Source: Podarcis liolepis (Eukaryota). From it: DNA of 64,000 nucleotides. A model generated the notes under the pieces. The model was given only the letters and a program-made list of their open reading frames with translations. It had not been told where the DNA came from and made no database searches. Location of the stretch: NCBI GenBank assembly GCA_965112155.1, contig OZ218107.1, one strand, 5' to 3'. Positions 8,700 through 32,390 of the stretch are shown here, in pieces. The first letter of the stretch is position 1. Each line of letters begins with the position of its first letter. The translations under genes were made by a program, and so were the position numbers.

Positions 8700-9330
8700 G
8701 TTTTTACAAATGATTTCCCCATTGTTAAAACAAGTAATTTTAAAGGATAGCATTCAAAGTTTTTCAAAACTAAGGAAAAGTACCCCTTCCTGGATACTGA
8801 GACAGATACTAGGTTTTTGACTGTGAAGCTCAGGGTATCCTGGGGTATGTCATGTATAAAATTTGCATCAGTTTTACAGATAAAGACTATATAACTATTT
8901 GGCTCTTGAGAATGAAACTCCTAAAGGTGGAATTGCCAGAGTGCTGGTCAAACTCTGACATCACAGGGCCCCTATATTACTTGAGTGGCAGGAGAAGGAG
9001 CCATGCTGCACTGGTAATGTTTGAAATGCTAATAGAAGAATATGTTCAGGATTGCAGTGTTGATTTTCTTGTAAAGGTAGGATATGTTGAATTGGCTGGC
9101 AGGTGTTATTGGTTTAATTTTTTAGTAATGCACCACTTTGCGAAGATACCAATATGAAATGCATTTTCAAATCAGTCTAAAGAAGCAAGCGCATGTTAAA
9201 AATATTCTGTGGCAATGATGGAAGTCTGTCTGGATATGAAGCACTCTTAGATAATAAAATGGCCCAAGGGAATACAAGTCCCTCTGAATCAGTTTTACAA
9301 AGCTGTTGTATTATAGGAACGTAGGCACTG
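8700..9330 (-). pseudogene. Second, decayed DIRS1 gag-like segment (approximate ends)
   Basis: 8780-8878 translates CKTDANFIHDIPQDTLSFTVKN, versus CRIAANFIHDAAQDSLELTVKN in the first copy; weaker matches upstream. Confidence 0.65.
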
Positions 9331-9660
9331 CAGCCACTCCCACTGAGATGAAATAACTGGATTATCTGGACTAACAATACAGTATATGACCTAGGAACTT
9401 GAGTTTTCTTAAATGATATAGGAATGGTTGGTTAATTTCAGCCAGAACTGTTGGAGCTAAGAAGTGCTGGGGCTACTATTTTGAACACAATTTTAAAAAA
9501 CAGGGGCAGGGGACCCCTTTGTGAATTTTATGAAACCAGAAGTCAAACTCTACAGAGAGACTTTAAATATTGTGCTGGCTGAGCAAAACAGAAAGTACTA
9601 ATTAGATATTTATGATTATGGTATACATCCATCTTGTATACCTCAGTCTAGATCACTAAC

Positions 9661-9663
<3 letters not shown>

Positions 9664-9704
<41 letters not shown>
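9664..9704. repeat. (TG)n microsatellite
   Basis: Seen directly. Confidence 0.95.
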
Positions 9705-9707
<3 letters not shown>

Positions 9708-9948
9708 CCACTTTGAGACTCCTATATCCCCTTGTAAATCGGGGGGGGGGGAATGTATCCAGTATGGATAACAAATGAAACAGTTGGTTAAATAATCTAC
9801 TTATTCCCCTATTCCCCTAGTGAAAAGAAGGCAATCGACCAGAGGCAGCGAGAGTGATACAGAAAGAGTTTAAAACTGATACTGCATTTAAAATTGATCA
9901 AGACAAGAAACCATGTGAAATAGTTTCTCATTCCCCTTGTGTCAGCTT

Positions 9949-9954
9949 TTTATT
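9949..9954 (-). terminator. Candidate polyadenylation signal (AATAAA) after the gag-like stop codon
   Basis: AATAAA about 33 nt downstream of the TAA at 9987-9989. Confidence 0.45.
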
Positions 9955-9986
9955 GACTGAAACTATTTTTGCTTCCTGGAAAGCAT

Positions 9987-10833
9987 TTATGCCAGAAGTC
10001 TCCTCTTGGTACATTTGTGACTTCTTTGAATGTTATACCCTTTCATATTCATGAGATGTAAGGACCGCAAACCTTTCCCTCTTTTTAACCTAGTGGGGAA
10101 CTGATAGGCTGTGTGACACCTGTGAGGATAATAAAGAAAAGAAGTGGAACAGTGTATTTTCCTTTTCAGCTGTTGGAGGGATTTCTTCTGTTGGGCATAA
10201 TCTTTGAAAACCTGTCCCAAGCCGTCTCCAAACAAAGTTCCACCACAGTATGGTAGGGATAACAGCTGGTATTTCATGCCTAGGTCCAAGGGCCAATGAC
10301 GCAACCAGCTAGCCCTCCATGCCACTATGAGACATGCTATGTTTTTAACTGTGAGTTCGAGAGAATCCTGGGCAGCATCATGAATGAAATTAGCTGCAAT
10401 TCTACACAGAATACGTGTTCTCCACTTAGAATCATAGAATCATAGAGTTGGAATAGACCACAAGGGCCATCGAGTCCAACCCCCTGCCAAGCAGGAAACA
10501 CCATCAGAGCACTGCTGACATATGGTTGTCAAGCCTCTGCTTAAAGACCTCCAAAGAAGGAGACTCCACCACACTCCTTGGCAGCAAATTCCACTGTTGA
10601 ACAGCTCTTACTGTCAGGAAGTTCTTCCTAATGTTTAGGTGGAATCTTCTTTCTTGTAGTTTGGATCCATTGCTCCGTGTCCGCTTCTCTGGAGCAGCAG
10701 AAAACAACCTTTCTCCCTCCTCTATATGACATCCTTGCTTGAAGGTGACTTCAGTGTGCCTCCCCTTATTGCTTGCTCCTTTTTCCAGCCAGGCTAATAA
10801 AGCCCTAGACGCATAGGCAGAATAAAGGGATAC
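9987..10833 (-). pseudogene. C-terminal part of the DIRS1 gag-like ORF, displaced by a +1 frameshift and a CR1 insertion
   Basis: After the shift at ~10834 it reads SLYSAYASRALLAWLE. After the CR1 it reads AANFIHDAAQDSL...VAWRASWLRHW...LLSLPYCGGTLFG to a stop at 9987. Confidence 0.75.
10428..10737 (-). mobile_element. CR1 LINE, 5'-truncated 3' fragment (young)
   Basis: Intact ORF2 C-terminus (RTRSNGSKLQERRFHLNIRKNFLTVRAV...PSLEVFKQRLD), (ATTCTATG)n tail, flanked by a possible 3-bp direct repeat ctt. Confidence 0.92.
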
Positions 10834-12130
10834 GTACTCTAAGCTGGGCTGAAACTAAGCTGAATGATCTCTTGATCATAGCCTCAACCTTTTTATCAAG
10901 TGGATCTTTGGGTACATAGCCCGCAACTCCAGAGAAGCATGTCTTAGCATTTCCACTGGCTGCTGCAGTATCTATCTTGGGTATGGTCCCCCAAAACACA
11001 GCTTTGTCCACTGGAAGAGGATACAGTTCATATAGAATTGCTGGAGCTACATGTCTTACATTGGGTTTATTCCAGATTTTATGGATTAGCTTTTGAATAG
11101 CTGAATGAACCGGAAGGGATTTATCTATCATGCTACTTTCTGCAGACTGTTCAATTTTGTGGTGTTTTAACTGTAGTTCTTTCTGAATATGCTTGAATAA
11201 GTAGTTCTGAGTCTCCATTTTGAACCTACGTATGGGCTCACTATCCTTTTCTACTTCCAGTAAGGAAGCAAATGATACTTCTTCATTCTCAGGAGGCGAC
11301 TCATCCCCCAAGTCACTGTGAAATTTAGGCTTTTTTGTAGAAGCTGAATTTTTTCCCACACTGTCCACAGCTTCAGGTACCGATAACCGGCAGTGCTCTC
11401 TAGTTGCTTCATAGGAGGCCACAGTAATCACTGTGTGTAACGCCTCAGGGTCCATTATTGAAGAAGGTCCAGCCTGCATGGCAGAAGCTACAGCATTTTT
11501 GGCCACAGCATGGGTATCCTTCAAAATGGTAGTAGTTTTGGGTAATACTACAGACGCCATTAGTGAACTATTGTCATACTTGGAGCAACTACGAGCAATA
11601 CTAGGAGCACCAGAAGGTCTTGCCTTCTTGACTTGGCCCCTGTAGTTGTCTTCTGAATCTGAGTTGGGGCCTATTGTGTGGTTGAACCACTGTTGTGAAG
11701 AGGCTGGGCCCTTGGTGGACCTTTGCTGATATTGGGGACACTGTCCTACCTGAGAATCTGACCCTTCATCCAGGTCTGTTATTTGCTGCCGCAGAGTGTG
11801 GTATCTAGAAACACCCTCAGGCTGCCATTCCGTTGGTTTATTTTTCCTCTTACATAGTGAAGGGGAGATGGAATTTACTTTTAAATGCTTTGGAGAGTTC
11901 CTGACTCTCCTGTGAGAGGTCTCTGATCTGGTGATGAAGGATTGCTCTCCTGACCTTCTGGATAGGTTGGCTCTCTGAGACCACACAGACACTGCTTTGG
12001 TAAAGGCAGGGTCTGCTTCGGGAAAACGAGTGACATCGCTACATTCTCTCTTTCTTCCTTTGTCCGTTTTCTTTACTGTCCACGGAAACATGGACCTGAA
12101 GTGATGAAAAAAGTTCAAAATACTCGAATT
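10805..12130 (-). CDS. DIRS1 gag / LAP2alpha-like ORF; candidate alternative last exon of NRCAM
   Basis: Uninterrupted ORF of about 440 codons. A Ser/Pro/charged region is followed by DIRS1-ORF1-like motifs (LIHKIWNKP, YPLP, PKIDTA, PKDPLDKKVEAMIKRSF...LR). Acceptors at 12131/12132 (phase 0) and 12096/12097 (phase 2). The family call is by motif recognition, not a database search. Confidence 0.7.
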   Translation of the reverse strand, partial: NSSILNFFHHFRSMFPWTVKKTDKGRKRECSDVTRFPEADPAFTKAVSVWSQRANLSRRSGEQSFITRSETSHRRVRNSPKHLKVNSISPSLCKRKNKPTEWQPEGVSRYHTLRQQITDLDEGSDSQVGQCPQYQQRSTKGPASSQQWFNHTIGPNSDSEDNYRGQVKKARPSGAPSIARSCSKYDNSSLMASVVLPKTTTILKDTHAVAKNAVASAMQAGPSSIMDPEALHTVITVASYEATREHCRLSVPEAVDSVGKNSASTKKPKFHSDLGDESPPENEEVSFASLLEVEKDSEPIRRFKMETQNYLFKHIQKELQLKHHKIEQSAESSMIDKSLPVHSAIQKLIHKIWNKPNVRHVAPAILYELYPLPVDKAVFWGTIPKIDTAAASGNAKTCFSGVAGYVPKDPLDKKVEAMIKRSFSLVSAQLRVRIPLFCLCV

Positions 12131-14292
12131 CTTGGGGGGGAAATGAAACAAAAACAAAAAAAAGTTTCCCTCAAAGACACACTGAATCATATTTTAGAAC
12201 TGCCTGAGGCAGCATGAACCAGGAAAGTGATTAATGGTAGCAATGTTCGGCTGCACAAAAGTTACAAACACATATCCCGTGATTTGAATATTTGCTTGCA
12301 TCTGCTCTGTCTCTAAAGAGAAAAGGGAGCACATCCTATTACCTGTGAATGCCGCAGGAACTTGTGTCTAAAAGGAGATTTTTTAGCAAAATGAATTAGA
12401 TGAGTGACTTCTTAAAAATATATATAAAATCTGGTAGTAAAGGTTCATGCAATCATTTACTTAACCGTACAACTAACTGACGATGGCATAGATGATTTCA
12501 CACATTAACATGCTAGTTGTTTCAAGACATAGACTAAAATCCTGGCTTAGGTCCCACATGATAATAGATTTGATGATCACATCTAGAACTGAGTTGCCCA
12601 ACAAAAACTCACCAGAGAATTGGCATAATTCTGCATGACTATGAGGTAGTATGGGAACAGAAAGCTATCATAGGTACAAGTTAGCATTTGAATAACTTCC
12701 CTTTGCGAACAATTCTGTCAATACTTAATTGCTTTAGGCCAATATTATTAGCCCAAATCTTTTATAATTATTGTTACCCAGCAACAATGAAATACAAAAC
12801 CTAATCACCTTTAAAAGTTTCTGGATTGTAAGTGCCATAGAACAACACAGGACCTATTCTTTGGCATTCAGAATCATACAATACACAGCTTAGAACAATT
12901 AAATGAAAGACTAATTTCCTATAGATAGAAAGCTACAAAAATATACTGAACTCGTTAAAAATGACAATTAGAGCACTACAGTACATGACATACAAGAAAC
13001 AAAGTATTTAAAATGATACATAAACATATCTTAAAATATGATAGAACGCACAAACAAAACACAAAAGGCTAACCTTTTAAATAAATCATCCTTTCTTGTT
13101 TAAACCAACACATTGGATTAAAATGATAAAGCTTTCTTTGAATTATATTATATATTGTTATTAGTAGTTTGAATAGCATGCCTTTGTGAGGCAAGAAATA
13201 CAGCTAATTTATTATTCTTATTAGATAACAATGAACTGGCTTTGAACTTAACAAAGTTCAGCTAATTTGAAACTACCACCTAATTTTTATCCATTCAAGT
13301 TGATGATTTTTACCCTTCATATATCACTTAGCTATTTTTTTCCTACTGTTGAACAAGAAGCCTAGAATTCATCTATGTTTGATTATTACACTACCAAGAC
13401 AAAAAACAAAATCTGAGTACCGCTGAAGTCCATTATATTTTTTACTACTAAGCCTGGATTTAATACAGGACATTCATATATTTTGCTTTATTCCTGCTTT
13501 GAAAGGAATAAGGCAGAAAGATTAAATAATAAGTAAAAATAAAAATCACACATGCACAAAACTGCCCCAAAATCACAGTGAACACTGGAAGCAAATATAT
13601 GAGACATATGAATGAAGTAAAACCCTGGATCCAAATTTGTTTTAAGTATTCGGTTAGCAATACTGCAATTTGGATCTGTATTTTACATTTCTGGTTGATC
13701 ATAATGTATGATCTTAAGATTTTCCACATAGGTTGCAATCCTTGCACTCTTACCTGGGGGTAAGCCCCAATGAACACAATGGTACTTACTTCTGAGTAAA
13801 CATGCATAGGATTGCTCCGGTAGATTGTAATCCACAGAGGCTGTGTGGGAACAAGGCTACCAGAAGACGATGAGACACTGAGGGAACTTCCACAACTTCT
13901 TCTAGAAACATTCCTACAGCAGTGGAGATGCTGCCATGCCTTGCCATGCCTTATGTTATGCTTTGCCACAATTACTGCACCCACAGAATTTCAAATTCCC
14001 CTTACAGTCAAGTGGATCATTAACTATCAGCTATGTTGGTATCTATGCCTGTGAATTGCCTTGCAATGGTAATGGCAATGGGGCTATGGTCCTACATCAA
14101 TATATTTGTGGGTGACACCACATGATATTCTTAATGTTGGTGAGACATCATGTTTGAGGATGCTGAGCTGATGAAGCTACTAACACCTCCAGTATTAAAT
14201 ACTTCTGAACGGTGTGGAGCAAGTGTTAAAAATAAGTAGTACTCTTCAAAATCAAGCAGACATGACCCGTACGAATTAACCTAATTGCTTAC

Positions 14293-14371
14293 CTGTATTC
14301 GCCAAGTGTTCCGTCGTCTTCTTTCATAGGCTGTATTTCTGGGTCACCATGAGCATCCTCTTTTTCTTTCA
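14293..14371 (-). CDS. NRCAM: NRCAM first cytoplasmic exon (79 nt, ends in phase 2)
   Basis: ttttAG|TG AAA...TAC AG|GTAAGC; VKEKEDAHGDPEIQPMKEDDGTLGEY. Confidence 0.97.
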
Positions 14372-15319
14372 CTAAAACATACAAATGAAGGATAACAATT
14401 AGCAAGGACTGGAAGTGTGATGCATGCCAACCCCTAGTGGGGTGTGTGCTTTCTGAAGGACCCTGTGTGCTGCAGCAGCTGTTTGCCAGTCACCTAACCC
14501 TTGCAATCTCCATCTCCTACTGCAGTTATAAAAAGGGGAGGACTGCCTTGGTTCATGCTGGAATCACCCTGGAATCCAGGAGAGCATTACTGTTATTAAG
14601 GATAAACTGGGCTGCAACTATATCCATGGAACATAAAGATCTACAGACAGAATGCTGATCTTCATCATAACACACTGCAATTTTCTTTTGGGTTGCATTC
14701 CGCAAGAGCATTTTCTAAAGAAGCGTCTACTGCAGAAACAGCAGAAAAGAGGTATCTGGTATTATTTTAGGCTTTGTAACTTGCAGGAGTTATATCATAC
14801 TTTCTTTAGCTGATTTTTATGTTTATATTCAGTTTTAGTTGAAGTGTACTTGTATGTTTGATTTCCACGTAATTTGTTTTAAATCAAGTTGAATTGTCTT
14901 TAGACCAGTTTTATTATCATCACCAGTATGAAAGGAAGGAAAAGGTCTCACCCACCCTCAGATATGACTAATAAACCCAAATCTAAATAAAGTAAAAGAG
15001 ATCGTGTTGCTTGTGCAACACAGACCATGCCTGCCATTTATAATTCCAATAGTTAATAGGTTTGCATCTTTAGTGGACACTAATAGGTCATATCAGATCA
15101 CTAATGATACCAAGTCTCCAGAACAAAAAAATACAGAAGCTCCTTTGATGGATAACCCTCATTCAGAGCCCAATAAGTGTGGGATGCCTTTGCCCAGAGG
15201 TACGGTGGCCCATAGATTGCAGCAAACTACTCAGCGAGGTTTTGCCCAGTATCTTGTTTGTGTGGTGGGCTCATGGGAAAACGCTATAATACTGTCTGAG
15301 CAACCCTCTATAATTAACC

Positions 15320-16610: not shown

Positions 16611-19600
16611 CTAGAAAATGGAAAAGGATTAATTATTATTCCCAAATATCCATTACATTAGAGTAATTTCACTCACAACCATTCTGTAAAAACACTCTAT
16701 GTATTAATTTTGCATCAGAAGAATGACACTGAATGTGGTATCTAAGAACATTTGACCTCAGAATGGATTTGCAGCAAGGTTAATTAATGATGCTCAACAT
16801 TGTGATTTGATTTATTTAGCATGCTTCACATGTCATGGATCTGTAATATTTGCTTCTTTAGCATACTCTACTTATTTTGCTAACTGATACCTATATATGG
16901 AGGTGGCTATGGCTAATATTTTTATAATGCAAAATTTGGAGGAAAGTCATTGAGTCCATAGCTTTGTGCAGAAAGGATGCATAATTTTACCAGCGAGATT
17001 ATAGCACATTCCTAAAGCAGATTTTAAAGTCAACGATGACAGTCAAATTAGTTCAGTCAAGCAGGTTCCTACACTTGCTCATCAGTATATGAAATTAATT
17101 GATCTGTGGAATTAAGCAGCATGATCCACTTGAAGGCATTACTTATGCACAGTAGATTCACCTTTCTGCAAAAGGAAGTGCAACAAGATTTCTATGTAGA
17201 TATTTACAAGTTTCACAGTTGTACTCTACAGGATTACTGCACTGTGGTTTTGAAAATGCATTCTTTATAAAAATAAGAGGTGATTATGGTAAGGTCTGGG
17301 GTTCTTTTATAAAGTATCTGAAAAATAACCTTACGCACCAACATAGCTAGTGATTAAAATACATAAAACTTTGACTTTCCAATGAATATATTAACATTTT
17401 ATTATTTTTAAAAGTCCATTTTCTTAATAGAGAAACCTGAAATTTTCCAAACATGCAGTTATGAGGAATTAAGTTTAGGGTCAAACATTAAAGGAAGACA
17501 TGCACATATAACATTCAAATGTATTCTGAAATTTCATGCCAACTAAACGAAACACTCCATGCATAATGTACCAAATATGTAACAAGAAAAGACAGTAACT
17601 TACTTTTGCAGCTTCTGATATTCCTTGCATACCAGGATACTGTTTATCCTGCTAAGGAGTACGCATTTCTAAAACCCAGTTGATGGAATCTAACTGGTAC
17701 CCTTGTGCTTTTGATCCAGCAATGCCTCTGTTAATGGATGAGCTAGAGAGGAAATTGTAGCTGTTTCCTCCTTTCCTCTGCTCCTCTCTGGAGCCCATTT
17801 TTAGATGTACTGGAGGCTACAGGGATAAAATAACCACTATCACTTTTCTTCCATTAGCAGATACATCCACTGGATCAAAAACACTTCTGTGAGCACAAGG
17901 GTATCAACTGGATTCCTCCCAAGTTTTGTTTGTTTGTTTACATAAACTTTTGTAGTTGTGTTGCACAAATTGTTTTCTTTAAGCACACTGCTAATTTCCC
18001 CTGATGAATACAGAAGCTGCAAGTACATAGGAACGGGCCGTGCTACGCTTAATTAATATGAAATAATGTCTTATCATGAAGAACAAGAACTCTTTCAGAG
18101 ACCACAAACATGTTATGTAGATTTGAGTCTAATCTGGGGTTTCAGACCACCACCCTGCCTTGCCCCATTTTACCTCCTCATATTTATTGTCACTAAGCAA
18201 GAATTTAGATGCTGAATTATTCCATTTAGTTTGAGGAATGACAATTCGCTGCTACATTATGGCAATGTAATTATCTTGCCACGCTTCTCTTCAGTTTGGC
18301 TTTCTCTGCATTTCCTATAAATAAAACTCAGGAAAATGCAGAAGAATTGTACTAAGTCAATCCATGAGCATGGAAAGAAATTGTCCCCACTATCTTCCTG
18401 CTACTTTCTTGCCCCTCTTTAACTGTCCCCGGCACTATCCAAAACACATTTCCCCTTTCCCCTTCCCTTGGTGATGAAAGGAACAAGCAAGGCAGCTCCA
18501 CACCTTCTCTCCACTACTAACAGCATGAAAAGGTCCAAGGGGCTATAGGAGATGTTCTTCTAAACAAGGACTTCCCCTTGCATGTTCACTAGCATTCAGG
18601 GCCCTCTATAGGTTGCGTGTCCTGTGGTATGGGCTGTCTACACTGCATCAGAGCACCTATACCTCTTCAGGAAGGTTCTGACATTTAGTGTTCTTTAGGA
18701 CCATGAATTCTGGTAAAGCCACTGACCTGACCAACAAGGTCCTCTCCAATTATATGATTCAATGGTTTGCTATTTTTGTGTTTATCTGGTAGGTGAGCTA
18801 TTTTTGTGGAAATCTGCCGTCTAGTTTTAGCTTTGCAGGTGTGAAATCCCCACCCCCACCCATAATCAGTTGGCTTCTGCAGCAATAGTCACAAGAAAAG
18901 TGTCATCCTATTGCCAGAGTTTCATTAACTTCTACATAAAAAAGCTGTGAATGCTGCTGTTTAAATTTTATCAGCTTTGCTATAAACACAGAAGGAAACT
19001 GATAAAAGGTATTGTAGGGAATTGAATTAAGACCAGATCATATAATTTTACTATGACTATACTAAATACACTGACATCATAGTTTAAGAGTTTACCATAA
19101 TGCCATACAATTTTTCAAACAGCCATACATTGGAAATATATAATGTAAAAGAACATTATAGCCCCTTAACTAGACAGTACTGATTGCCTAGGGCAGTGGA
19201 GAAGAATGAAATGTGTGTCTAGAATTTAAGCTTATTGTCAGCTTGTACTTGCAGAATAGGTAGTGCTGACCATGTGTTATGAGTACAGGTGACTCCCTAC
19301 TTATGGGATGGTTACATTCCAGCACCCCATGTGCATAAGTGAAAATTGCGTAAGTGGGAAGCACCCTCTAAACACCTTTTAAATGCTCTTTCTGCCACGC
19401 TCTCTCCAATCCAGATCAAAAGGAGTGTACCAAAAATATCCACAAGTGGAACTGAGGCTTTGGGGCACCAAAGGTCAGGTTCCAAGGTCTTGCAAGGCCT
19501 CAAACAGCATCTCAGACGTGACTTTCAGTGCTTTGCAAGGCACTGAAAGTTGTGTAGGGGGCCCTGTAGTGTGGATGCTGAGCACCCACAAGATTTTTTT

Positions 19601-20518
19601 GTGGGTGCTCGGGCCCCAAGGTCCCCCTAGAGTTGGCACTCCTGGCAGTCACACGCGAGTTGATGACGCAGAAGTGGGGATTCGTCTGTACTGGCATTTT
19701 CCCAGACCCTTTCTGAACACATGGGGTTGCATGTAGAAGAGCACTTTGCATTCCTCCCATATATAATCAGAGAACATGATTTTAACTTTTTAAACTGGCC
19801 CTTTTTATCAGGTTCTTTGGTATCTTCCTAAGTGTTCCACGTTATAAAATTAACATTTGTTCTTAGCATTGCTATTGAAATATTGCAGAGTATATACAAT
19901 TTATGAAACACCTGTACCAACAGCACCCCCCTAAATACTTCCATAAAGAACATGATTATGCCACTCAACATGACATCAATATTGGTAACAGAAACTATTA
20001 TTTTCCTCTTTAAATTATTGCTGTTTTATAAAGATAAATGGAAAGAAGCTCTTTATCTCCCTTCTTACATTTGATTCAGTACAAAACATGCCAAATACTA
20101 TACTTATTCTGGTTTTAATACATTTGGTCTATCAGAACAACAAAGTTAATATATTTTTTATTGATCCTTAAGCTAGAAGGAACGAGTTTGATAATCTGAG
20201 TTCGATGTCCTTAGACTTAGTTATTCGCTAACACAAATGTACAATCCAGAAACAAAGCATTAAAAAGGGCCCCTCAAAAGGAGCCATGAAAAATGTATAC
20301 TTCCTTACAACAAATGGCAAAGTGATAAAAACAAATTCATGGAGCATACCAAAGACATGCTGGTGTGAGTATGAGACACACATTTTAGCTCTCCCTTGGA
20401 TAGAGCAGAAAAGGATAATTTTATATATAAATATACAAACATAGCACTACTTCAGATTCCCAGCACTTAACACATCACAATTCTGAATGCAGAGCAGAAT
20501 TGGTATGGTGTGCCTCAC

Positions 20519-20671
20519 CTGGACCTGTCTCAAACACAGCATCTGAACTCCTAAAACCAGAAAGACCCTCAGCACCAACCCGGACTTTATATGATGTTCC
20601 TGGTGTTAATCCTTTTAACATAAAGAAGTTCCGGGAACCATTAACATTTTCTTTTTTCAAATCTTCTTTGC
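20519..20671 (-). CDS. NRCAM: NRCAM exon, FN3-5 part 2 (153 nt, alternatively spliced block)
   Basis: AG/GT bounded; KENVNGSRNFFMLKGLTPGTSYKVRVGA...VFETGP. Confidence 0.95.
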
Positions 20672-21916
20672 CTACAAAATTTTTAGGAACACAACAATTG
20701 GAGTATTTAAATTCACTGTCTTGAATTCATGCTTACACTTCTTACTGCCATTTGGCAAAAGTTTAGATTTCTTTCTCAAAAATGTTTTGCAGTTATTTAC
20801 TAATATACAATATATAGGTAAACTGTAGGCTAAATGACAAAGAGTATTGTGGCACCTTAAAGCCTAATATTTTTTTATTATGGTACGTGCTTTAATGGAC
20901 ATCCTTAGTCAATGTGGTACCCCTCCAGAGGTTGTAAAATCACAATCCTCTTTGAATTTTGGTCAGGCTGGTTGGGGCTGATGGGGTTTGTAGTCGAACA
21001 ACTTCTAGAGGACACTGTGTGTGTGTGTGAATGTGCAAACAGTAAGGAGTGAGATTGGAAGGGAACGAGTTAAAAAAGACCTGAAGACTACAATAATTAT
21101 ATCCGACTTTAAATGGATGTAAAATAATTACAGCCTCTATTCACAAAGCAACATTAATAATTATGAATAGTATAGTCACAAATGATTTTATGTGCATTTA
21201 AGATATACTGTAATTGTCACAGTTTGTACTTTTAGCATTTCATTTCATAATGAAATATATACTGCTTATAACCCTGCTCCCAACCCTATGTGGGTGTATA
21301 CTTGTCAACTTAGAATAGTACTTCATGCATCTGATGAACTGGACTCCAGTTCACGAAAGCTTACGCTGTTAGATATTTATTAGCCTTTAAGGTGCCTTTA
21401 GCAGCAGCTATCAGCCTGGAAACAGTCACAATCTCATTTTTCATCTATTGTGAAAGATTCATTTTGATTAGTCTGCTAGTGGAAAGGAAATGTTGTTTTA
21501 ACTGTTAAAATGGCCACAAAGATGTGATTATAGTTTTGTTTTCTTGGAAAATGGTGTTAAAAGCCTAAATATTTTAGAGAGGCACATTTTCTACTTAGAT
21601 TTTTCTTTACATTTTCCTTAATTTCTCAGCAATCAAGCAAAGAAAAGGGGAGGAATTCATTCATAACCAGAATTTGTGTGGCTCATTGAACTGCCCACTT
21701 CTGCCTAGTTCATCTTTCTCAGAATTAAGAGTGAAAATCCTTCCATTCAGATATGATTCTCACATCTTTCTGTTCAGGATTTATTAAAAATCTGAAAGAT
21801 ACTCATTGTATAATTACAGAAGGCTTCTCTGAAACTGGATTTTACTGGGGACTGATGATGGCATTTTCCCTCTCATGTAATGGGGCAAGTATGCCCTGAC
21901 CACCAAAAAGTGACCT

Positions 21917-22036
21917 TTGGGGGATAGCTCAGTAGGTAGAGTGTGAGACTCTTAATATCAGGGTTTTGGGTTCAAGCCCCACATTGAGCAAAAGATTCCT
22001 GTATTGGTTGGTCCTTTCCGACTCTATTTTATTCTA
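21917..22036 (+). mobile_element. Short tRNA-head SINE (Squam3-like)
   Basis: gatagctcagtaggtagag...gggttcaagcccc; decayed CR1-like tail. Confidence 0.7.
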
Positions 22037-22951
22037 TTTTAACCTCATGGACATAATACAACTGAAGGAAAGCAAACAAGCAGACACCTTTTGCCAGCAA
22101 AACATCAAGCATTTAATTTTAGGGTTATAGTTGCATCAAATTGCTGCCCTGAAGATGTTTAGAAAACCAGGCTTTCTAGTTTTAATGAAGACTAATTGGC
22201 TACATATGAATTTAATGGCACAAAAAAAACCCAGTTTCAATATACTGTAGTTTAAAGCGTATTGTTAAAGACGTTTTTGCTTCTTAACCTTTCAGGTTAA
22301 GTGTCTCTGAAGCTGCATTGCATTAATGAGGTTTTAATAACAGAATTCCAAGCACAATAAATATGTATGTGCTTAATAAGACTGAATGTACTCCATGATG
22401 GGCTGCCTCATCAACTCTCACCAGAGTGAGGTGGGCAAAGAGGGGTAATTGAAGATGCAGAAGCAGCACGTCCTCACGTATATATGCTGCTTGGTGGGGA
22501 ACTACCAATTCACACAGTTTTACATGAGCTGTTCCCTCTGGGGCTGTGTGTGCTTTTCAAGACAATGCTAAAAATTCTGCTGAATTGCCCTTTGTGGGTG
22601 AGGGAAAGGGTTTGATTCAGTCACCACCTACTAAACAGCTGATCAACAGGAATTTAGTAGCTGTGATAGAAAACTCTATGTGCAGCTCCATGCATGTCCA
22701 TTTAGTTAGGGGCATTTTATTAAGTGCTGTTGGCTCTAATTCCTAAAAACAATACAATAAAATAACATTAATTCAAATGTGTGCGTGTACACACTTCTAT
22801 GCACTTCATATTGAAAAGTTTGCTGCAGTTTTTTAAAAGCAAAACTAGTTTTTGAAAACTTAAGTCGATTTTGGGCCATTTTCTTATTATTATTAAAATA
22901 TTTTGAAATATATTACAGCATTTGGAAGAATTCAATGAAATGTCTTCTTAC

Positions 22952-23077
22952 TGCCTGCCACACCATATTCAACATAAATGTTCTCATGAACTGGACCCTC
23001 ATACTCCCAACTGATATTGGCATAGGTCTCAGCAGCAGCTGCCGTAACATTTTTGATCCCTGGATACACTGGCGGCA
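22952..23077 (-). CDS. NRCAM: NRCAM exon, FN3-5 part 1 (126 nt, alternatively spliced block)
   Basis: AG/GT bounded; VTAAAAETYANISWEYEGPVHENIYVEYGVAG. Confidence 0.95.
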
Positions 23078-24069
23078 CTAAATACACAAGAAAAACAGAG
23101 CAAGATATGAAAGGCTGCATGCATCTCGTACAATCCAGTTTTAACTTCTTCCCTAACCTGAATCTTAAGAAATAGAATATTGATTTGTTTCTGTTTTCGG
23201 GAAAATGAAAAATGTGGACTTACCATGAATTCCCATTAGCAGCAATTCTCAGGTGGACCACTCTTCCGTTCAGTGAAAGCCCCTCCTCTTGGTTACCAGG
23301 CATGGTCCTCTTTAAGATGGAACCAAGGGGAGGAGCTTCCCTCAGCCCCTGGGCTGTGACAAGAGTTTGGATAAGCTTCTACCATGAACTTTACTCTGAC
23401 AGGAGGTCTACTAATAGTATTAGTAGATCTAATACAACAAGCATGAAAACACTGTAGCTAATGTACTGCTATGATTAACAAAGAAAAAGAACTTCCTACT
23501 AGAGTCAAACTATCTAAACCCACTACAGATACTGAATGGGCTTCCAAGAATATAACTGTTGCTTTTCTCTATATTTACCTATTTGCAAACTACCCCACCT
23601 TTGAATCACTGAGAATGGAAATAAACAATGTCAATATTTCCCTCTCTGCGGTGGGGTAACCTTTAATTCAGGTGTACCAAGTTTTCTTGTATCCAAACAG
23701 CAGGGAGATTCAATTGTTTTATCCCAAAGCCGCCTTCTTCTATGAAATGCAGCATTAGGATAACGCATCGTTACAAGTATGATCATTTGATAATGTCTAG
23801 CAAAGGTGTGCATGAATCTTGAGGGTGCATCTCTGCGCACAGTAGGCTTCTGTAGGCTGTGGAAACAGCAGTATTGCATTTATAGTGAGCTGGCATCTTA
23901 TCCTTATAGACTTTAAATATCGTCTTCTAACCAACGGGACATTGTGAGGATGGACAAATCTGTCCCCACTGAAGATTACTACAGAGGGTTGGACTTCCAA
24001 TTCCCTCCCAGCTCTACAATTCTATGATCAAATCTCTGTTCAGAAACAGTAAATGAATGACCATGAAAG

Positions 24070-24235
24070 GATAGGAACATAGGAAACTGTCTTATACTGA
24101 CTTGGACCACTGGGTTCATCTAGCTCAGTACTGACTGGCAGTAATTCTCCAGGATTCCAGGTGGAGGTCCTCCCCAACCCTACCTTGAAATGCTGGAGAC
24201 TGAACTGGGGATGTTCACATGCTCTATCACTGAGC
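24070..24235 (-). mobile_element. Decayed SINE with a CR1-like tail
   Basis: Minus-strand GCTCAGTGATAGAGCA head and (TTCCTATG)-type tail. Confidence 0.5.
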
Positions 24236-24926
24236 TGTTGCTCTTCCATGAAATCTGACCTCCCAATGAAAAGTGGAATGAAATACTCTAGTTCTCCTAG
24301 CTTCCATTGCTTTGCAGAAACCCCCATGTGTAGGTCATCCAAATACACCAGGGAGGGTTGCAGTGAAACTCAAACAGGAAAAGGTGGAAAAATCAGAGCC
24401 ATGAGAGCTATTCTTGTCCCCATTTCCTTCTCCTCATTTTGCTGCCACTATATCCACTATCGCTGCCACTATATCCTTGTGTTGTTTTTATGGTGGGACA
24501 AGGAGGACTCAATACCTCTCAAAGCCACCTGATAAGCTGGCACATTTAGAAAGACAGTAAATGTCTTACACCTGTTTGGACATAATGTATTTTACCAAAG
24601 TTATAAAAAAAATGGAGTGCTTTGGTGGCCCTGAGGTTGGGAAACTGGAAAGTAAGCAGTCTTCATATTTCCCCAAACTATATGAACAATCTCCATAAAT
24701 AGAAGTGGACAACAGGTTCACGTATCATTTTTTTCCTTCCCAAATTTGCTTTTTTGTCCTCCTACATATAATCCAAATTTCTAACTAAAAGGATTAGGGA
24801 AGGGAGGGGGGAATCTATTTTCAAAATTGTCACAAAGGTCTGTGATGCTCTGAACAACTGTCTTGCCTGCCAACAATGCAAGGCAGGCCTGGAAGCTGAA
24901 GAGAAGCCCTTCCTCATGGTGTTGTA

Positions 24927-24928
<2 letters not shown>

Positions 24929-24957
<29 letters not shown>
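24929..24957. repeat. (TTG)n microsatellite
   Basis: Seen directly. Confidence 0.95.
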
Positions 24958-26050
24958 ATTAAAGTGGATCCTGCCTGGTAACCCAGTGGAGGTGATTCCC
25001 CGAGTTCTGTTCCACTGTGGCACCATTGGAGAATTAGTGACTACAGGATTAGCAGACATTGCATATGACATGGTAGTAAGCATGCTATGTTAGTCTATTA
25101 TGAAGTACAACTAACTATATAACTGTTTAATTCTATGCAACTCATTTAAGAGTATGCCCCATTCAATTCAGTGTGACATTTCCAGATAAGTAGGCATGTT
25201 TATGAATTCTACTTCTCAGATAGCCACATCTAAAAGGCTAGCAAACATCTCAAAAGTGACAGTAATTCTACAGATTGATGGAAAACCATAAAGACACGCA
25301 GAAATATAACTTTCTATTTTCATATTGTTTTGGTAATTCTTGAATTTCTTTCCTGCAGTTTCTTTCTGTGGAACATTGCAGTTCAGCTGTTTTGATGGCA
25401 TTAAAATCCATAAGATAAATATCCTTCCCCTTATATGTTGGTAGGTACAGTCTGGGGTGGACCCTGGTAATATGGTGCCCTGTGTAAGGCCAAAGTTTGA
25501 TGCCCTCCCGGCCCTTGTAGCAGCTTCCCAAATTGGCTAAGTGAGGCACCGGACTTTGGGATGAAGGCACAAGGCTGGGTCCTGGAGCCCTACTTCACAG
25601 AGTTGGGCAAGCACTAACTAGGCTTTTGGAGGGATCCTCTCAAAGCCCTCGTGCCTCTTTCCTGAAGCAAGCACTTACTTAGGCTTTGGAGAGGAAGCGG
25701 GAAGGCGCCCCCTCGGCTTGGCGCCCTGTGCAGGGGAACCAGTCTTGCCACCCTAAATCTGTCTCTGGTACAGTATGCATAACAGGGAAGGTTTCAAAAA
25801 GGGGTTTCAAAAGGGTTCTCTGAATTTTCTTCATCAGAGAAAGCAGGAAAGAGGAAAACAAACAGTGAAAATATTTTTACAGAGTAAAAATGTTTCATAT
25901 ATCACAGCACCATCTTACCTGTTAAGTCAACACAACACATACATAAATGGACACCCATGCAGGTTCCTTTAAAACATTTTACTTGATACAATAGGAGAAT
26001 AAGTTGCAAAAGGAAAACAAGCACATAAAATCATTATTAAGATGCAGATC

Positions 26051-26095
<45 letters not shown>
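26051..26095. repeat. (AAT)n microsatellite
   Basis: Seen directly. Confidence 0.95.
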
Positions 26096-27195
26096 TGTTA
26101 TAGCTATCTTCAAAGGCTAATAATCATTCATTCATCACTCTGATGAACATAGGCTTTTATCACAAAGAGGCACCCATCAGGAACTGCAATGGTACAACCT
26201 GTGCCATCCCAGAGATGACCAAGTAAAGAAGGATTTTATAGCTGAAGTGCATGGTAGGTTGCGTTCGTTACTTTATTAATTATTTGTATTATTTTTTTAC
26301 CCACCCTTCACCTCGGGCAGGTTACAGCAATGTAATAAACAATAATAAACACAGATAAGCAGTAAAAATCATAAAACAGTTTCTGTCACAAAAGAACAGC
26401 AGAAATTCAGCATAAGAGGTGGGTTTCATAAAATGGAAACTTTAGCTGTTAAAAGGTAAGGTAAAGTGATTCCTCTTCAGCACCTCTGTGTGTTCTATGT
26501 GGTTAATTCACAACATGTTCTCAAACGTTATTCAGCATGCAAAACCATTTGAGGAATGAAATGCCATGCATTTCTTTCCCCCTGGAAACAATGCTGAAAA
26601 ACCTGTCAGGGGAAAGATCAGGGTTTTTTATTTTTAAGATTGTGCTAATCCACCCCCACAATGGTTCATCAACCAGCTTCTGGAACTGAAATCAACTTCC
26701 TGCTTTCTGTGGCAGCACATATTTACTGCTGATTGATCTAGAAAAGAAGGAAGCTCCCAGTTTGCATCTGTAAAACAAAATATAGAATCGCCCTACTTTG
26801 AGCCTGTGTAAGTTCTAGGTACTCAAAAATAGGAACCTTCCTTGACGAACTTGCAAAACAGATGCCTTTTAGTAATGCAACAGATATGCAAAATTAAAGG
26901 AAGTTGCAGCAAAACACAATTGGATATTATTCCTTCAAGAAAGAGGACTTAATTCTGACTGATTTCTTGAAAATGTCTGAAGACTAATCTTTGCTTCCCC
27001 CAAAATAACAGTTTACATGATGATGCAACACATTGTTACCAGTCAGTTAGCACTTTCAGGAACCATGCTCCACTCTGCAGAGATGCATTCAGAGCAAAAT
27101 CAAACATGAATCTGTTCATGCTCTGGGCACAGAGAGAAATTTATGGAGAACTGTGATTTTGGAAACGCTTCTCTTGGAGTAATCTAACAAAGCCG

Positions 27196-27485
27196 GTAAA
27201 GTCCAGCTCCAACGACCTTCTGCTGGTTCCCTCATTGCAAGAAGTAAAGTTACAGGGAACTAGGCAGAGGGCCTTCTCAGTAGCGGCACCCACCTTGTGT
27301 AATGCCCTTCAATCAGATTTTGAACAAATAATCAATTGTATGACTTTTAGAAGACAGCTGAAGGCAGCCCTGTATGTGGATTTTTTTTAAAGTTTGATGT
27401 TTTATTGTGTTTTTATATTTTGCTGGAAGCCACTTAGAGTGTCTGTGGCAACCCAGCCAGATGAGCGGCATATGGAATTATTTAT
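27196..27485 (+). mobile_element. L2-like LINE 3' fragment
   Basis: cagagggccttctc...aatgccct...gcagccctg...ccagccagatg plus a TTA-rich tail; near-duplicate at 27705-27975. Confidence 0.65.
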
Positions 27486-27704
27486 TTACTATAACTATTA
27501 TTCTTTTCAGGAAAACAAAGAATTGTCATCTTTGCCAATGTGGTTCCCCCCACCCCAGTACATAATCTGATTATTGTATTATGAACAGGGGAAATACCCC
27601 TGTATGATGGTAAGAACAGGAAGAAATGGGGAGTTCTAAAATTTTTGGATGATGAAATGCTAACATCCAGCCTAAAAGGCTTTGGCCCAGTATGCCTACA
27701 GAAG

Positions 27705-27975
27705 CATCTCCACCCCCATCGTTCAGCCTGGACACTGAGGTCCAGCTCTGAGTAAGTTTACAGGGAATTAGGCAAAGGGTCTTCTTGGTAGTGGTGCCTG
27801 CCCTGTGGAATGCCCTCCCATCAGATATCAAGGAAATGAACAACTATCTGACTTTTAGGCAGCCCTGTTTATGGAAGTTTTTAATGTTTGATGTTTTATC
27901 GTGTTTTTAATATTCTGTTGGGAGCCGCCCAGAGTGGCTGGGGAAACCCAGCCAGATGGGCGAGGTACTACTGCT
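27705..27975 (+). mobile_element. L2-like LINE 3' fragment (second copy)
   Basis: Homologous to 27196-27485. Confidence 0.65.
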
Positions 27976-29617
27976 ACTACTAAAAATTTATTACTATTAT
28001 TACCATTGTTGTTGTTATTGTTATTGTTATCCTCTGCTTCAGTTAATAAACAACATATCTATATAGCTTTATTTTTTTTATTAACCAAGTTAAATAGCCA
28101 GTTAATTCATATAAATAGGCAAAATACCAACAATGACAACCATCTATTTAAGTAAAAACAACAACATTAATTTATGGATGTACCAGAACAAGTATGTTGT
28201 GGTTGTAAGGTGTCAAACTGCTACATAACATGTCAGCACAATATACCAAATAATTTCTGTATGAAACTGTTTTGATATTTGTAAGCATATTTTGTTGAAG
28301 TGTTTCAACAAAACAAGTAAGGATAGGTGGGAATCTCATGTAGACCACATCTTTAAGCAAACTGACCTAATCAGGACTTCCTAGACCAATCCAAGAGTGG
28401 GAATGTAATTACCCTTCAGTTTTCAAGCTTTTCTGAATTTTGCGATATAGTTCTCACTTCAAGAAAGTATCCAGATTCATAAAACAATGCAAATTTTAGG
28501 CTAACATATACTTTATATGTATATTGTGTTTCATTATGTGTTTAAGAATTTTTTTATGTGGGATTTTAAAAAATAGAGAATAATGCAGTGGAATGAATTT
28601 ATGAATATATGCTTGGGGAAAACTGACATGAGCCAGAAATAGGCTGATGTGTCCAGATTCTCTGAAATTTTGATTTGAAATTCTACGGGAAGTAATCCAA
28701 CATTATGATGTTTTAATCCATGATGCTTTAATACAACATCACAGTTCTATACTACTCTTTAGATAGTAACACTGATTACCATTTCTCCAATTATTGTTTA
28801 TATTTCACTTTCTTATGCTAATAACAACAGCCATCTTAACTTACAGCTAATAAGTTCTATAACCTGTGAACCAAACAGCGCATTTAACAGGTCAGCCTAT
28901 GAACAGATAACATAAAACTCTCCAATAGAACAGTAGGTATTAGGAACCGAAATGGTCATGAAACTATCCTCTCTGTGTGTTTATTAAGGCCACACATATA
29001 AGGAGAAAGGAATACTGGAAATGAGTAAGCAAAAGATGGCATTCAATGAACTGACTGTACATGTCTGTGTGTCTGTGTATTTGAAAAGTGAACTTTATTT
29101 AATACCATCTTTGCTTCCACTTTATTTGCAATATACTAGCCCACTTTGCTTCTACAGGACACAGACATATAAAGCTCGGTGTGACCAATAAACACATGGC
29201 ACTAGATCTCACCAATGCTTGAATTAATTGGGGAGGGAAGCCTTTACTCCCCCCCCCCCCATTGCTAGCAGAGGCATTCTCAGAGGTTCTGAAGTAAGAG
29301 AAACCTGCAAGCTATCATTACTGCCACAAAACAGCCTTAGTGATAGAAAAATGAGCTCCTCCCTGTAGCACAAACTTGCCTCCTCCTCAGAGCCTGTCTA
29401 ATGGATTGTCATGAAAGACAGTACATACATGTATGCTTTTTGAAGCAATAAGACAGTACTATGTTAAAGAAATTGATGGATGTCCAATAAACATTCCCTC
29501 TATCAGCGCAACACTCTCCTTTAATGAATTGCATTGTTCCTTTCACTTATACAGGCTGATTTCTTTTTAAAGAAACTGAATTTAGAATTTGAAAAAATCC
29601 ATACAATTCATGCTCAT

Positions 29618-29653
29618 CTTTACCTGCACTTAGGTCAAGCGGAAGAATACCAA
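29618..29653 (-). pseudogene. NRCAM: Remnant of the NRCAM 12-aa cassette exon with non-canonical splice sites (pseudoexon)
   Basis: 36 nt encoding VGILPLDLSAGK (recalled human AGILPPDVGAGK), but flanked by ...tttaTG| and |ATgagc instead of AG and GT. Confidence 0.8.
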
Positions 29654-30178
29654 CATAAATGGAAGAAAATAAAAGGACACTACATAATTAGGTACAACAA
29701 AAGGAGCATATAGATCTATATATATACCTATCTATAGTATAAATCTACACATATATATTAAAGCACAAAGGCATGCAGTTAAAGTATTAGAAGAAGGGAA
29801 TAAGAAGTTAAACACTCACACTAAAGAGTGGTTTTAAAAACAAAGACTAATAATCATGCATTTGTTTCACCAACTATCATTTTTTTTAAAAAAACCCACA
29901 CCTTTCTTAACCACTTATCCTTTTGTCTTATAATTTATTAATGTGCAGTTAAGTTAAATCATAGGTGTGCTTGCATGTGCACACACACACTACAGCAGTT
30001 TTCCAGAATAAAGACACTTCCTTGTTCTGCCAAACTTAGGACAATTGTCGGTTGCTTGGTCCAAATAAAGGACTTGCTTGACAGCTTTTTCTTTTCTTTT
30101 CTAAGTGACCAGCATTACTTTCCTCTGTTTGCCAGTTTTTATGATACTTTTAGTCTGGCATTTTCAAAAACAGCAGTA

Positions 30179-30523
30179 CAGTGGTGCCCCGCAAGACGAA
30201 TGCCTTGCAAGACGGAAAACCCGCTAGACGAAAGGGTTTTCCGTTTTGGAGGTGCTTTGCAAAACGAATTTCCTATGGGCTTGCTTTGCAAGACGACAAT
30301 GTCTTGCGAGTTCCTGCTGGTTTTTTTCCCTCCCCCCCCCTTTATCTAAGCCGCTAAGCCGCTTATCGGCTGATCCAATCAGCAGATAAGCCGCTAAAAG
30401 CCGCTAATAGCGCTAATAGCGCTAATCCGCTAATCCGTCAATGGGCTTGCTTCGCAAGACGAAAAAACCGCTAGACGAAGAGAATCACAGAACGGATTCT
30501 TTTCGTCTTGCGAGGCACCACTG
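30179..30523. mobile_element. Tc1/mariner-like MITE, CpG-rich and probably young
   Basis: 22-bp TIR cagtggtgccccgcaagacgaa / ttcgtcttgcgaggcaccactg, TA TSD, internal gcaagacga and ccgcta repeats. Confidence 0.85.
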
Positions 30524-30698
30524 TACTTGTTTTCTGAGGGAAGGTCACTTTATAGTTTCTTTCACTTGTAACTTGCCCCTGCTTAGCATCTTACGTGTTC
30601 TGCTATGTTTGGTTTTGGCTTTATTCCCTGTTTTGGATACTATTAGATTTAGGGCAGTGATTCAGAGGAAAGTATTATACCTGCAGAACAGGCTTTAA

Positions 30699-31606
30699 TT
30701 AAGAATCCTAATGCAGCGGCCAAAACTATAAAACGGATACAAAACACAATGCATTATATTTAGGGTATAATACTGCTTAGACAGCTGCAGTATAGCGTGT
30801 TCTCCTTCATGGAGAGCACGTGTTGCGGTGGGGGCCGACAAGACACTCCAAAATTGTGGGGCGGGCCAATTGATCATTGGCCACTGTTGTGACTGGGCTT
30901 CCCTTGTTGTTGGGAAGAGGTTAATGTTGCCATTTTGTGATTGACAGCTAGAAACGTTAAAACTCCCTGCACGAAGCGTAGAGCTTCCTCTTTTCACTCC
31001 ATGCATCGGATTGCCTGTCCCCCCCTCACTATATTTAGGGTTGTTCGCATTGACCTTGCTATGCCTGTCATGGAGTCATCTGCTCTTGGGGCAGGGGCCC
31101 GGTAGGAATTTTGTCCATTTGGCTGATTGGCTGGTGCCATTTGGTTTTTGCCTACGGTGTAGCAAATCGTCACAACTTGTAAGATTGCGGTTAGGCATTG
31201 GTTTTTGGTTTGGTTGGTTGAGGGGCATGGACTGGCTGTGCCTGCCCCTCTAATGCTGCTGCTGCAAGGGTATTCCATTAAAGGAATACAGGGGCTCACT
31301 ATTGCTTTTGTCCGAACCCTGTCAAGGGGCTAGGGCCACGCAAGAGCCCCTGGTTGCATTTGGGGAGGGCTGAAGGCAGGTTCCCTGCTCCATCGCTACC
31401 CCCAAATGTATTCCCCTTTTCTGACTTTCACAGGCTTGCGAAATGTCAGTCTGTCCCCACCGGGGGCAGATAGTAGCAACCAATGCCTAAGCAACCACTC
31501 ACATTTTTTTGTATTTTAATAAAGTTGTGGCCAAATTATGCCAAAAACCTTAAACAAAAAATTCTGTGTGATGTGTGTTATTTGGGGTGGCTTGGGGACC
31601 TCGACA
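30699..31606 (+). mobile_element. Solo LTR-like repeat (left end approximate)
   Basis: Extensive similarity to 44012-44830 (ctatatttaggg...ttggctgattggctggtgccatttgg...aataaagttgtgg); AATAAA at 31518; ends ...GACA. Confidence 0.65.
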
Positions 31607-32390
31607 TGCAAACAGATGCTTTTACATGGCTTTCTGACTATTGTCTTCATGCTAATGATTCTGTGGAAGTATCTGTTCAAATATGTCCCAATCATTAAGC
31701 TATGAAAGCAAATGGCAGGCCCAAATGGCAACTTTCTGTGCACTTGGTTGAGTATTGTAGAGTATGCGTAAAAATATATATTTCAAGTAGAGATTTCTCC
31801 CCACAGGGTATATCTGTACTTGCAAAGAAAGAACGCTCACGTGGAACTGCACAATCCACAGTGGTTTAATGTAAGTCCCCATTCCATACTGGTGGGGAGG
31901 CAGCTCTGACTGAATCACTCAGGACTGCAGTAAGTATAAATGCCAAAAGTAGACAGTAAATCTTTAAAACAGTGCAATCCAGATATGACCTAAAATATTG
32001 TTTTCATTGGGCAGTGGGAAGCAAGGAAACCGTTTCATAAAATACATACAGCTGCAAGATGATCATATAGCCATTTTAGAGTGAATTTCGTGTGACCATA
32101 GCCCAACTATGGTGCCTGGAGAGCTATGTGACAATTTAAAAAGCATAGTTTAGCATGACACAATAGATATAAGTGACTATATGCATATGCAAGTCCCTTG
32201 TAAAACAATTATGCACAGCTTTTCTAGGGATAAACATTACAGCAGTTCTAAGAGCACCAAATTTTTGAAAACCAAAACCATAGAGACAATTCTCCAACTA
32301 CAGCCAGCCAAATTCACTTATTTTTAGAGAGAGCAAAATAGCACAATTATTCAAATGTAAGTGGACATTCTTTATACATACCCATCTTAC

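Follow-up and report, generated by a model that had tools for sequence, protein, structure and literature searches.

Does the NRCAM gene of a lizard carry an alternative last exon taken from a retrotransposon, and what has become of that exon? The question is raised by a stretch of 64,000 nt from Podarcis liolepis (GenBank assembly GCA_965112155.1, contig OZ218107.1; this whole stretch is called the window below), in which a long open reading frame (ORF) lies on the minus strand within an NRCAM intron. An earlier note on this DNA had proposed that the ORF is a gag remnant of the DIRS1 type, spliced in frame to NRCAM in place of its canonical C-terminal exons. Based on the results described here, it is very likely that the window holds a gag-derived terminal exon of NRCAM which is old, spliced and shared with birds, and which is broken in this copy.

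Using a crane NRCAM isoform (P0020) as a tblastn query, about 20 colinear minus-strand exon matches were found from 63283 to 14292 with 51–98% identity, followed by a match to the tail of the same protein at 12109–10005. The window contains nearly the whole NRCAM gene, and no canonical FIGQY exon was found in it. The exon that serves as donor to the gag-derived exon is a cytoplasmic one, and its 3′ end reads ..VKEKEDAHGDPEIQPMKEDDGTLGEY + AG in phase 2. The acceptor, TTTTTTCATCACTTCAG/GTCCATG, has its AG at 12097–12096, with the exon beginning at 12095; a long pyrimidine tract ends in CAG/G, and the acceptor is a strong one. The two phases are compatible (GAA TAC AG/G TCC ATG, giving E-Y-R-S-M), and the phase-2 exon end at 14293, the acceptor and the 429 codons up to the TAG at 10805 were found in the sequence just as the earlier note had read them. 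It should be noted that the chain of NRCAM exon matches has a gap of 16 kb (16612–32388, minus strand), with the fourth FN3 exons on one side and the membrane-span exon on the other. Some bird isoforms are longer (1800–1856 amino acids, with an extra domain PF28033), which suggests optional exons in this gap.

The mechanically called ORF (10805..12190, minus strand) is 461 amino acids long and contains the 429-codon frame. Its apparent N-terminus (FFLFLFHFPP...FFHHF) is the pyrimidine tract read as protein, a point already made in the earlier note, and the conserved Met of RSM corresponds to ATG 12091–12089. The distal motifs of the DIRS1 ORF1 type are also present, in two other frames: three-frame translation places VSLYSAYASRALLAWLE in frame 1, that is, outside the 429-codon frame, and WRTRILCRIAANFIHDAA...RASWLRHW...LPYCGGTLFG in frame 2, ending at TAA 9989–9987.

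A search with the 461-residue ORF recovered four relatives, all of which carry the Pfam LAP2alpha domain (PF11560; curated cut-off 25 bits): P0003 (81.4 bits, E 9e-23), P0001 (65.3 bits), P0004 (52.7 bits) and P0002 (42.5 bits). Pfam and PDB searches with the open ORF alone gave no match, as no more than the first portion of the domain is encoded there. The out-of-frame piece of the window at 9990–10433 scored 27.1 bits (E 3.5e-6, profile positions 158–230 of 234). In addition, residues 120–331 of P0003 aligned to residues 19–230 of 235 of PDB 2V0X_A, the mouse LAP2alpha C-terminal domain, with an E-value of 3.9e-21. The LAP2alpha/DIRS relationship suspected in the earlier note is borne out by these matches and by the retroelement polyproteins described next.

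A profile search over 1.84 billion representatives yielded 446 relatives, with a large gap in score after a few NRCAM tails (789, 771, 251 and 154 bits, then 131 and lower). The proteins sampled below this gap were LAP2alpha-domain proteins of frogs and gecko of about 400–500 amino acids, whose matches extended from about profile position 163–200 of 581 to about 520–530; the first ~160 residues of the tail had no match outside NRCAM in this search. The polyproteins P0181 and P0185 combine LAP2alpha with RVT_1, and P0185 also contains RNase H; a recombinase in relatives of this type was judged by eye from C-terminal motifs only. The window shares 24–37% identity with retroelement gag proteins. 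Taken from these comparisons, the tail exon is best described as descended from a DIRS-type retrotransposon's gag ORF and as a member of the Pfam LAP2alpha family. No remnants of reverse transcriptase, RNase H or recombinase were found in the window by tblastn with three retroelement polyproteins, of which only the gag part matched, in agreement with the earlier note. Within the window, blastn also revealed no other copies of the gag exon or of the 309-nt repeat that interrupts it.

The tail consists of a short basic cluster, several Ser/acidic motifs that are conserved, a linker with little conservation and a LAP2alpha-like helical domain. In the window, the open part retains the N-terminal motifs, which are conserved, but of the domain just the beginning; it is 59% identical to P0001 and 42% identical to the tail of the crane. 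Compared with the crane, the first 100 residues are 49% identical and share the motifs DKxxKR, EADPxFTKAxSV, RRSGxQ and RSETS, the middle is 29% identical, and the LAP2alpha-like domain 52–56%.

The same fusion is annotated in birds. The Balearica crane protein XP_075600621.1 (P0020), "neuronal cell adhesion molecule isoform X8", is 1729 amino acids long and includes ...DDGTFGEYRSMSAWTGKK...; at its junction, ...KEDDGTFGEYRSMSAWTGKKLDKEKKRKGS..., NRCAM ...GEY is fused to RSM..., as predicted from the window. Pfam assigns to it Ig and FN3 domains, a truncated Bravo_FIGEY (positions 1–40 of 86) and, at residues 1452–1657, LAP2alpha. When the crane tail was used as a query, the best 120 of 211 matches were all bird NRCAM isoforms with PF11560 and the same GEY/RSM junction. 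The bird tails are 611–613 amino acids long, which bears out the ancestral length of about 600 given in the earlier note. A search with P0001 also returned intact tail ORFs of 450–612 amino acids from about 80 named bird species, labelled 'LAP2A protein, partial'. Among them are palaeognaths (Casuarius, Crypturellus, Eudromia, Nothoprocta and Nothocercus), Galloanserae (Anseranas, Chauna, Penelope and Alectura) and many Neoaves. On these genome records, 'LAP2A' is probably an annotation error that goes back to the name of the mammalian domain.

For maximum-likelihood trees, the window was represented by its broken exon pieces, read through with X at each break. The NRCAM tails formed one clade (100/100), in which the window, P0001 and P0003 grouped together (100/100) as sister to the birds. 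The bird part branched into Palaeognathae and a pair of Galloanserae and Neoaves, so that the exon is present in all three major bird clades and its tree agrees with the species tree. This topology indicates one old, vertically inherited, single-copy orthologue rather than scattered transposon copies; near-identical copies were seen neither by blastn in the window nor in read depth. Since the window stands within the tail clade as sister to the birds, the insertion cannot be younger than the separation of the window's lineage from birds. The bird–lizard split is roughly 280 million years old. The co-option as an alternative last exon of NRCAM, as claimed in the earlier note, is supported by the bird models and by the splice joint described below, but its restriction to this lineage is not, as the exon predates the bird split. 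Four of the five tests by which the earlier note could have been refuted favoured it, and the fifth, dN/dS, had little power.

Conservation extends beyond the exon. The translation ..SILNFFHHF of the acceptor flank is common to the window, the galliform-like contig P0002 and the neoavian contig P0304; the acceptor region of P0002 reads NRSILNFFHHFRSM, and that of P0304 reads MNFFHHFRSM. About 40 nt of intron directly upstream of the acceptor are thus conserved at the level of translation between the window and birds, a pattern typical of a regulated acceptor.

Transcript evidence was sought in four sequencing runs, compared over positions 9850–14450: X1, X23 and X24 come from one relative of the window's species (relative A) and X5 from another (relative B). 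Among the runs recorded as RNA, none contains the stretch. X5 covers 9851–12093 at a depth of 4–6 and the NRCAM exon at a depth of 26–41, and the intron is bare apart from one repeat. X5 behaves as cDNA, because exons are covered and unique intron sequence is not. One X5 contig of 310 nt joins 12093 to 14291 (with the cut shifted by +2, 12095 and 14293) and skips 2197 nt; the ends of the gap are CT..AC on the plus strand, that is, GT..AG on the minus strand. The 14293-to-12095 junction anticipated in the earlier note was therefore seen exactly, in a contig of an RNA-like run of a close relative, which is good but single evidence. The short side of this joint is 26 letters, roughly the length by which a 31-mer unitig can reach into an exon that a second isoform also uses. 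In X1, the intron is covered as well as the exon, and this run served for sequence differences only, not for expression.

The window copy is interrupted by three lesions, not by two. The first two are small insertions relative to X1 and X5, and the third is a truncated repeat of 309 nt (see the table below). The frame arithmetic is consistent (+4, then +1, then an in-frame block of 103 codons with stops), and the window pieces are colinear with P0001 and the bird tails once an X is placed at each break. As judged from the same alignment, the repeat sits between K and W of a domain loop (...SSSK/WRT...). It has a depth in the thousands in all four runs, encodes ...RFHLNIRKNFLTVRAVQQWNLLPRSVVESPSLEVFKQRLD... 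and terminates in ATTCTATG-type repeats. Its ORF had no match in the protein atlas search. The end of an ORF2 followed by 3′ octamer repeats is what we take to be the 3′ end of a CR1 element, and the block is probably a CR1 long interspersed nuclear element (LINE). Identity to P0001 is 70% before the lesions and 64–69% after them; since the pieces behind the lesions are as similar to P0001 as those in front, the lesions are recent. The copy in the window is truncated and probably decaying: it has lost the back half of the gag domain through three recent insertions, and the product would be a tail of 430 amino acids.

It is possible, but unlikely, that these lesions are assembly or read errors or a private allele, and that the species normally makes the full tail of about 600 amino acids. 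Insertions of a 309-nt repeat and of 4 nt are untypical of sequencing errors. When 31-letter words of the stretch were sampled, fractions of 1.00 and 0.99 were present in X15 and X16, two runs of the window's own organism, so that the contigs of these runs carry the same sequence. What speaks for an error or an allele is that two species which share about 0.7 of these words (a rough divergence of 1% and 3%) are without the 4-nt and 1-nt insertions, that one lesion alters the length of a run of five A, and that three lesions within 110 nt would be odd for independent events; moreover, the pieces downstream of the lesions exhibit no extra decay.

Two further sequences, P0142 (178 amino acids) and P0143 (125 amino acids), belong to a third lineage of reptile type and were found in Logan contigs of 1194 and 1537 nt. 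They are 57–63% identical to the window and 58–60% identical to P0001. These are two separate ORF fragments, broken in the same loop region, which may come from different species, and residues that are invariant elsewhere are altered in them (RIWN to RILN and WGT to WDT). They may represent a second, independent decay of the domain.

Several points weigh against the reading of the ORF as a used exon of NRCAM that is broken here. The junction is seen in a single contig with a depth of 3.7, whose short side of 26 letters falls below the 31-letter bridging rule. X5 comes from a related species and not from that of the window, and its RNA nature is only guessed. In the true RNA-seq runs X23 and X24 of relative A, no reads fall on the tail exon; the depth of the NRCAM exon is 0–0.4 there, and these runs are uninformative because NRCAM itself is hardly expressed there. 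For the lesions, the only confirmation comes from runs which possibly represent the assembly's own sample. In a partial sample of 25 listed differences between relative B and the window, 16 were non-synonymous and 9 synonymous (over 1318 and 374 sites), which gives an omega of about 0.5 with little power and not clearly different from neutral. The dimer score given below is possibly a memory of the solved LAP2alpha dimer. Finally, the gull copy P0298 is modelled as a stand-alone protein from the Met of RSM, which makes an independent transcript possible.

This last point leads to the suggestion that the ORF is mainly a separate intronic gene translated from that Met, the fusion with NRCAM being minor or artefactual. 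The gull model (LOC134510183, NCBI) is a protein of 611 amino acids beginning MSAWTGKK, the B10K annotation lists a separate 'LAP2A protein' in many birds, and the Met is conserved in the window. The B10K names are the result of homology projection and not of transcripts, and in the best 120 of the 211 matches of the crane tail, all of them NCBI models, the tail follows NRCAM sequence across the identical junction. In addition, the contig of relative B spans the NRCAM–tail junction, and conservation of the flank upstream of the acceptor is expected if the acceptor is used. We consider a mainly separate gene very unlikely.

That the ORF is, in this lineage, the leftover of a decaying intronic transposon fragment with no host role is extremely unlikely: the domain is broken in the window, the third lineage is known only from two ORF fragments with changed invariant residues, and omega between close species is only weakly below 1, but without selection a frame of 429 codons that is colinear with the bird orthologues and 42% identical to them could not have lasted so long, conservation is seen in the junction residues and in the acceptor flank, X5 covers the tail exon at an exon-like depth and splices it to NRCAM, identity to retroelement gag proteins is only 24–37%, and no other copies were seen.

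Returning to the gag-derived NRCAM exon, we suggest the following course of events. Before the split from birds, a DIRS-type gag ORF would have inserted into the NRCAM intron that lies behind the ...GEY exon, and it would have become a large alternative 3′-terminal exon. Splicing from 14293 to 12095 would then produce ...GEY-RSM... followed by a tail of about 600 amino acids. This isoform is unchanged up to ...GEY, with ectodomain, membrane span and juxtamembrane segment, and exchanges the remainder of the cytoplasmic domain for the gag-derived tail; the exons for the ankyrin-binding FIGQY and the PDZ ligand are absent from it. We infer that the tail could uncouple NrCAM from ankyrin and PDZ scaffolds. 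The pattern YRSM, put forward as a sorting motif in the earlier note, is found in birds and the window alike; it may be a YxxPhi AP-2 signal, which the tail would add.

It is also possible that the tail pairs receptors in cis through a LAP2alpha-like homodimer. For residues 100–345 of P0003, a homodimer was predicted with an interaction prediction score from aligned errors (ipSAE) of 0.85 against 0.19 for the best control, although this value may reflect memory of the solved relative 2V0X. At least 95% of the contacts were shared between runs, and the predicted local distance difference test (pLDDT) of the partner was at least 82; of 30 solved pairs of one chain, 21 reach the mark used for dimers, as against 0 of 23 single chains. 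The tightest contacts in the model connect residues 202–245 with 256–317, the stretch removed in the window by the frameshift and the repeat. Because the core contacts map to this stretch, the truncated product should not pair in this way. In the window, translation stops at 10805 owing to the three recent insertions, and the product would be a tail of 430 residues that lacks the dimer core.

A conserved basic cluster, K-K-x-D-K-x-x-K-R, follows directly after the junction and resembles a nuclear import signal, and the mammalian relative of the domain binds lamins and chromatin partners. With these two features, a role of the tail in the nucleus could be imagined: NrCAM would be a membrane-to-nucleus signalling receptor, whose tail, after shedding and release by gamma-secretase, would act there like a paralogue of LAP2alpha. 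We regard this as very unlikely. If it were true, sauropsids would have gained on a neural adhesion molecule, by convergence, what mammals gained on TMPO, and the loss of the domain in the lizard-type lineage would be a natural knockout.

The arrangement has two known counterparts. The TMPO-LAP2alpha and ZNF451-L2a exons of mammals are derived from a DIRS1-like gag, and each is a single large 3′ exon whose use leaves out the exons further downstream (Abascal et al. 2015, PMC4495291). That paper reports no non-mammalian case in either TMPO or ZNF451 and does not mention NRCAM (PMC4495291). The NRCAM tail resembles TMPO LAP2alpha in being encoded by a single large gag-derived 3′-terminal exon, alternative to the downstream exons of the host (PMC4495291), and in carrying PF11560; P0003 aligns to 2V0X over its whole length, and a homodimer is predicted, with the reservation given above. 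The differences are that TMPO is a case of mammals and the present one of sauropsids, that the host genes are not the same, and that LAP2alpha is a nucleoplasmic LEM protein whereas NRCAM is an adhesion receptor of the plasma membrane with the domain on its cytoplasmic tail. In ZNF451-L2a, the same gag domain was captured as a large alternative 3′ exon that displaces the C-terminal domains of the host (PMC4495291), but the host is a nuclear zinc-finger SUMO ligase. The best matches outside NRCAM are the LAP2alpha-domain proteins of 400–500 amino acids from frogs and gecko, which likens the tail to ORF1 of the DIRS-type elements of amphibians and reptiles; unlike these, it is a single copy, is 24–37% identical to them and has no reverse transcriptase, RNase H or recombinase nearby.

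A further parallel concerns the junction itself. In L1CAM, the YRSLE motif for AP-2 is produced by a neuronal 12-nt cassette exon, the RSLE mini-exon, after which the canonical tail follows. The Y-R-S-M at the NRCAM junction fits YxxPhi and is close to the YRSL of L1, but RSM represents the first three codons of a terminal exon.

Full-text searches found no literature linking NRCAM with LAP2alpha or DIRS; the isoform is already in the bird RefSeq annotation and was found in no paper. To judge from the family assignment, this would be the third known capture of a DIRS-type gag domain as an alternative last exon, after TMPO and ZNF451, and the first outside mammals. With a third capture, it becomes possible to test the idea that this gag brings along an acceptor and end signals of its own and can colonise genes easily for that reason (PMC4495291). 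An undescribed, deeply conserved isoform would also be added to a neural adhesion molecule that has been studied heavily, without the ankyrin and PDZ links that define the function of the L1 family at axon initial segments and nodes. The intact bird copies and the apparently intact copy of a close relative, set against the broken copy here, offer a natural comparison for the function of the tail. At the same time, a mis-annotation should be flagged: many bird records name this NRCAM exon 'LAP2A protein', and the gull RefSeq LOC134510183 presents it as a separate uncharacterised gene.

Features of the NRCAM tail locus in the window (positions of the 64,000-nt stretch)
Feature	Position	Strand	Remarks
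NRCAM cytoplasmic exon	14371-14293	minus	reads (V)KEKEDAHGDPEIQPMKEDDGTLGEY + AG, then GTAAGC
Intron, 2197 nt	12096..14292	minus	GT at 14292-14291, AG at 12097-12096; spliced out in the tail isoform
Polypyrimidine tract and acceptor	12096..12140	minus	in-frame translation ..SILNFFHHF, also in bird contigs
Open part of the gag-derived terminal exon	10805..12095	minus	429 codons from 12094; TAG 10807-10805
Lesion 1, four extra bases	10831..10834	minus	relative to X1 and X5; frameshift leading to TAG at 10805
Lesion 2, a single additional base within a run of five A (minus strand)	10780..10784	minus	relative to X1 and X5, at 10780
Lesion 3, 5′-truncated high-copy repeat, 309 nt	10425..10733	minus	skipped by the X5 contig
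Back half of the LAP2alpha-like domain and C-terminal end	9987..10424	minus	now out of frame; ancestral stop TAA 9989-9987; 62% identity to P0001
AATAAA	9954-9949	minus	33 nt past the ancestral stop
Probable continuation of the 3′ untranslated region	8764..9986	minus	X5 contig 9; lower bound approximate

The earlier note had placed the end of the transcript at the AATAAA behind the stop at 9987. Both the stop and the signal are present, but the latter is not supported as a transcript end: the depth of X5 does not drop there, and a contig of 1171 nt that ends at 9934 passes the lower edge of the compared stretch (9850) and runs at least about 1.1 kb beyond the signal. About 1.1 kb beyond the ancestral stop, within the probable 3′ untranslated region, lies a weak, decayed second gag-like fragment (8708–8884, minus strand; ..DANFIHD..FTVKN.., DANFIHDIPQDTLSFTVKNL), matched by P0003, P0001, P0002 and P0020 in tblastn with E-values of 8e-6 to 4e-4. 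It may be a tandem remnant or a second insertion. Just past the AATAAA, under X5 cover, there are a (CA)n microsatellite of about 24 units (9661–9708) and a run of about ten C (9739–9748), both on the minus strand. A short repeat in the intron, at 13700–13853, has a depth of about 160 in the contig runs and attracts reads in both RNA-seq runs, and the neighbouring intron has little or no cover.

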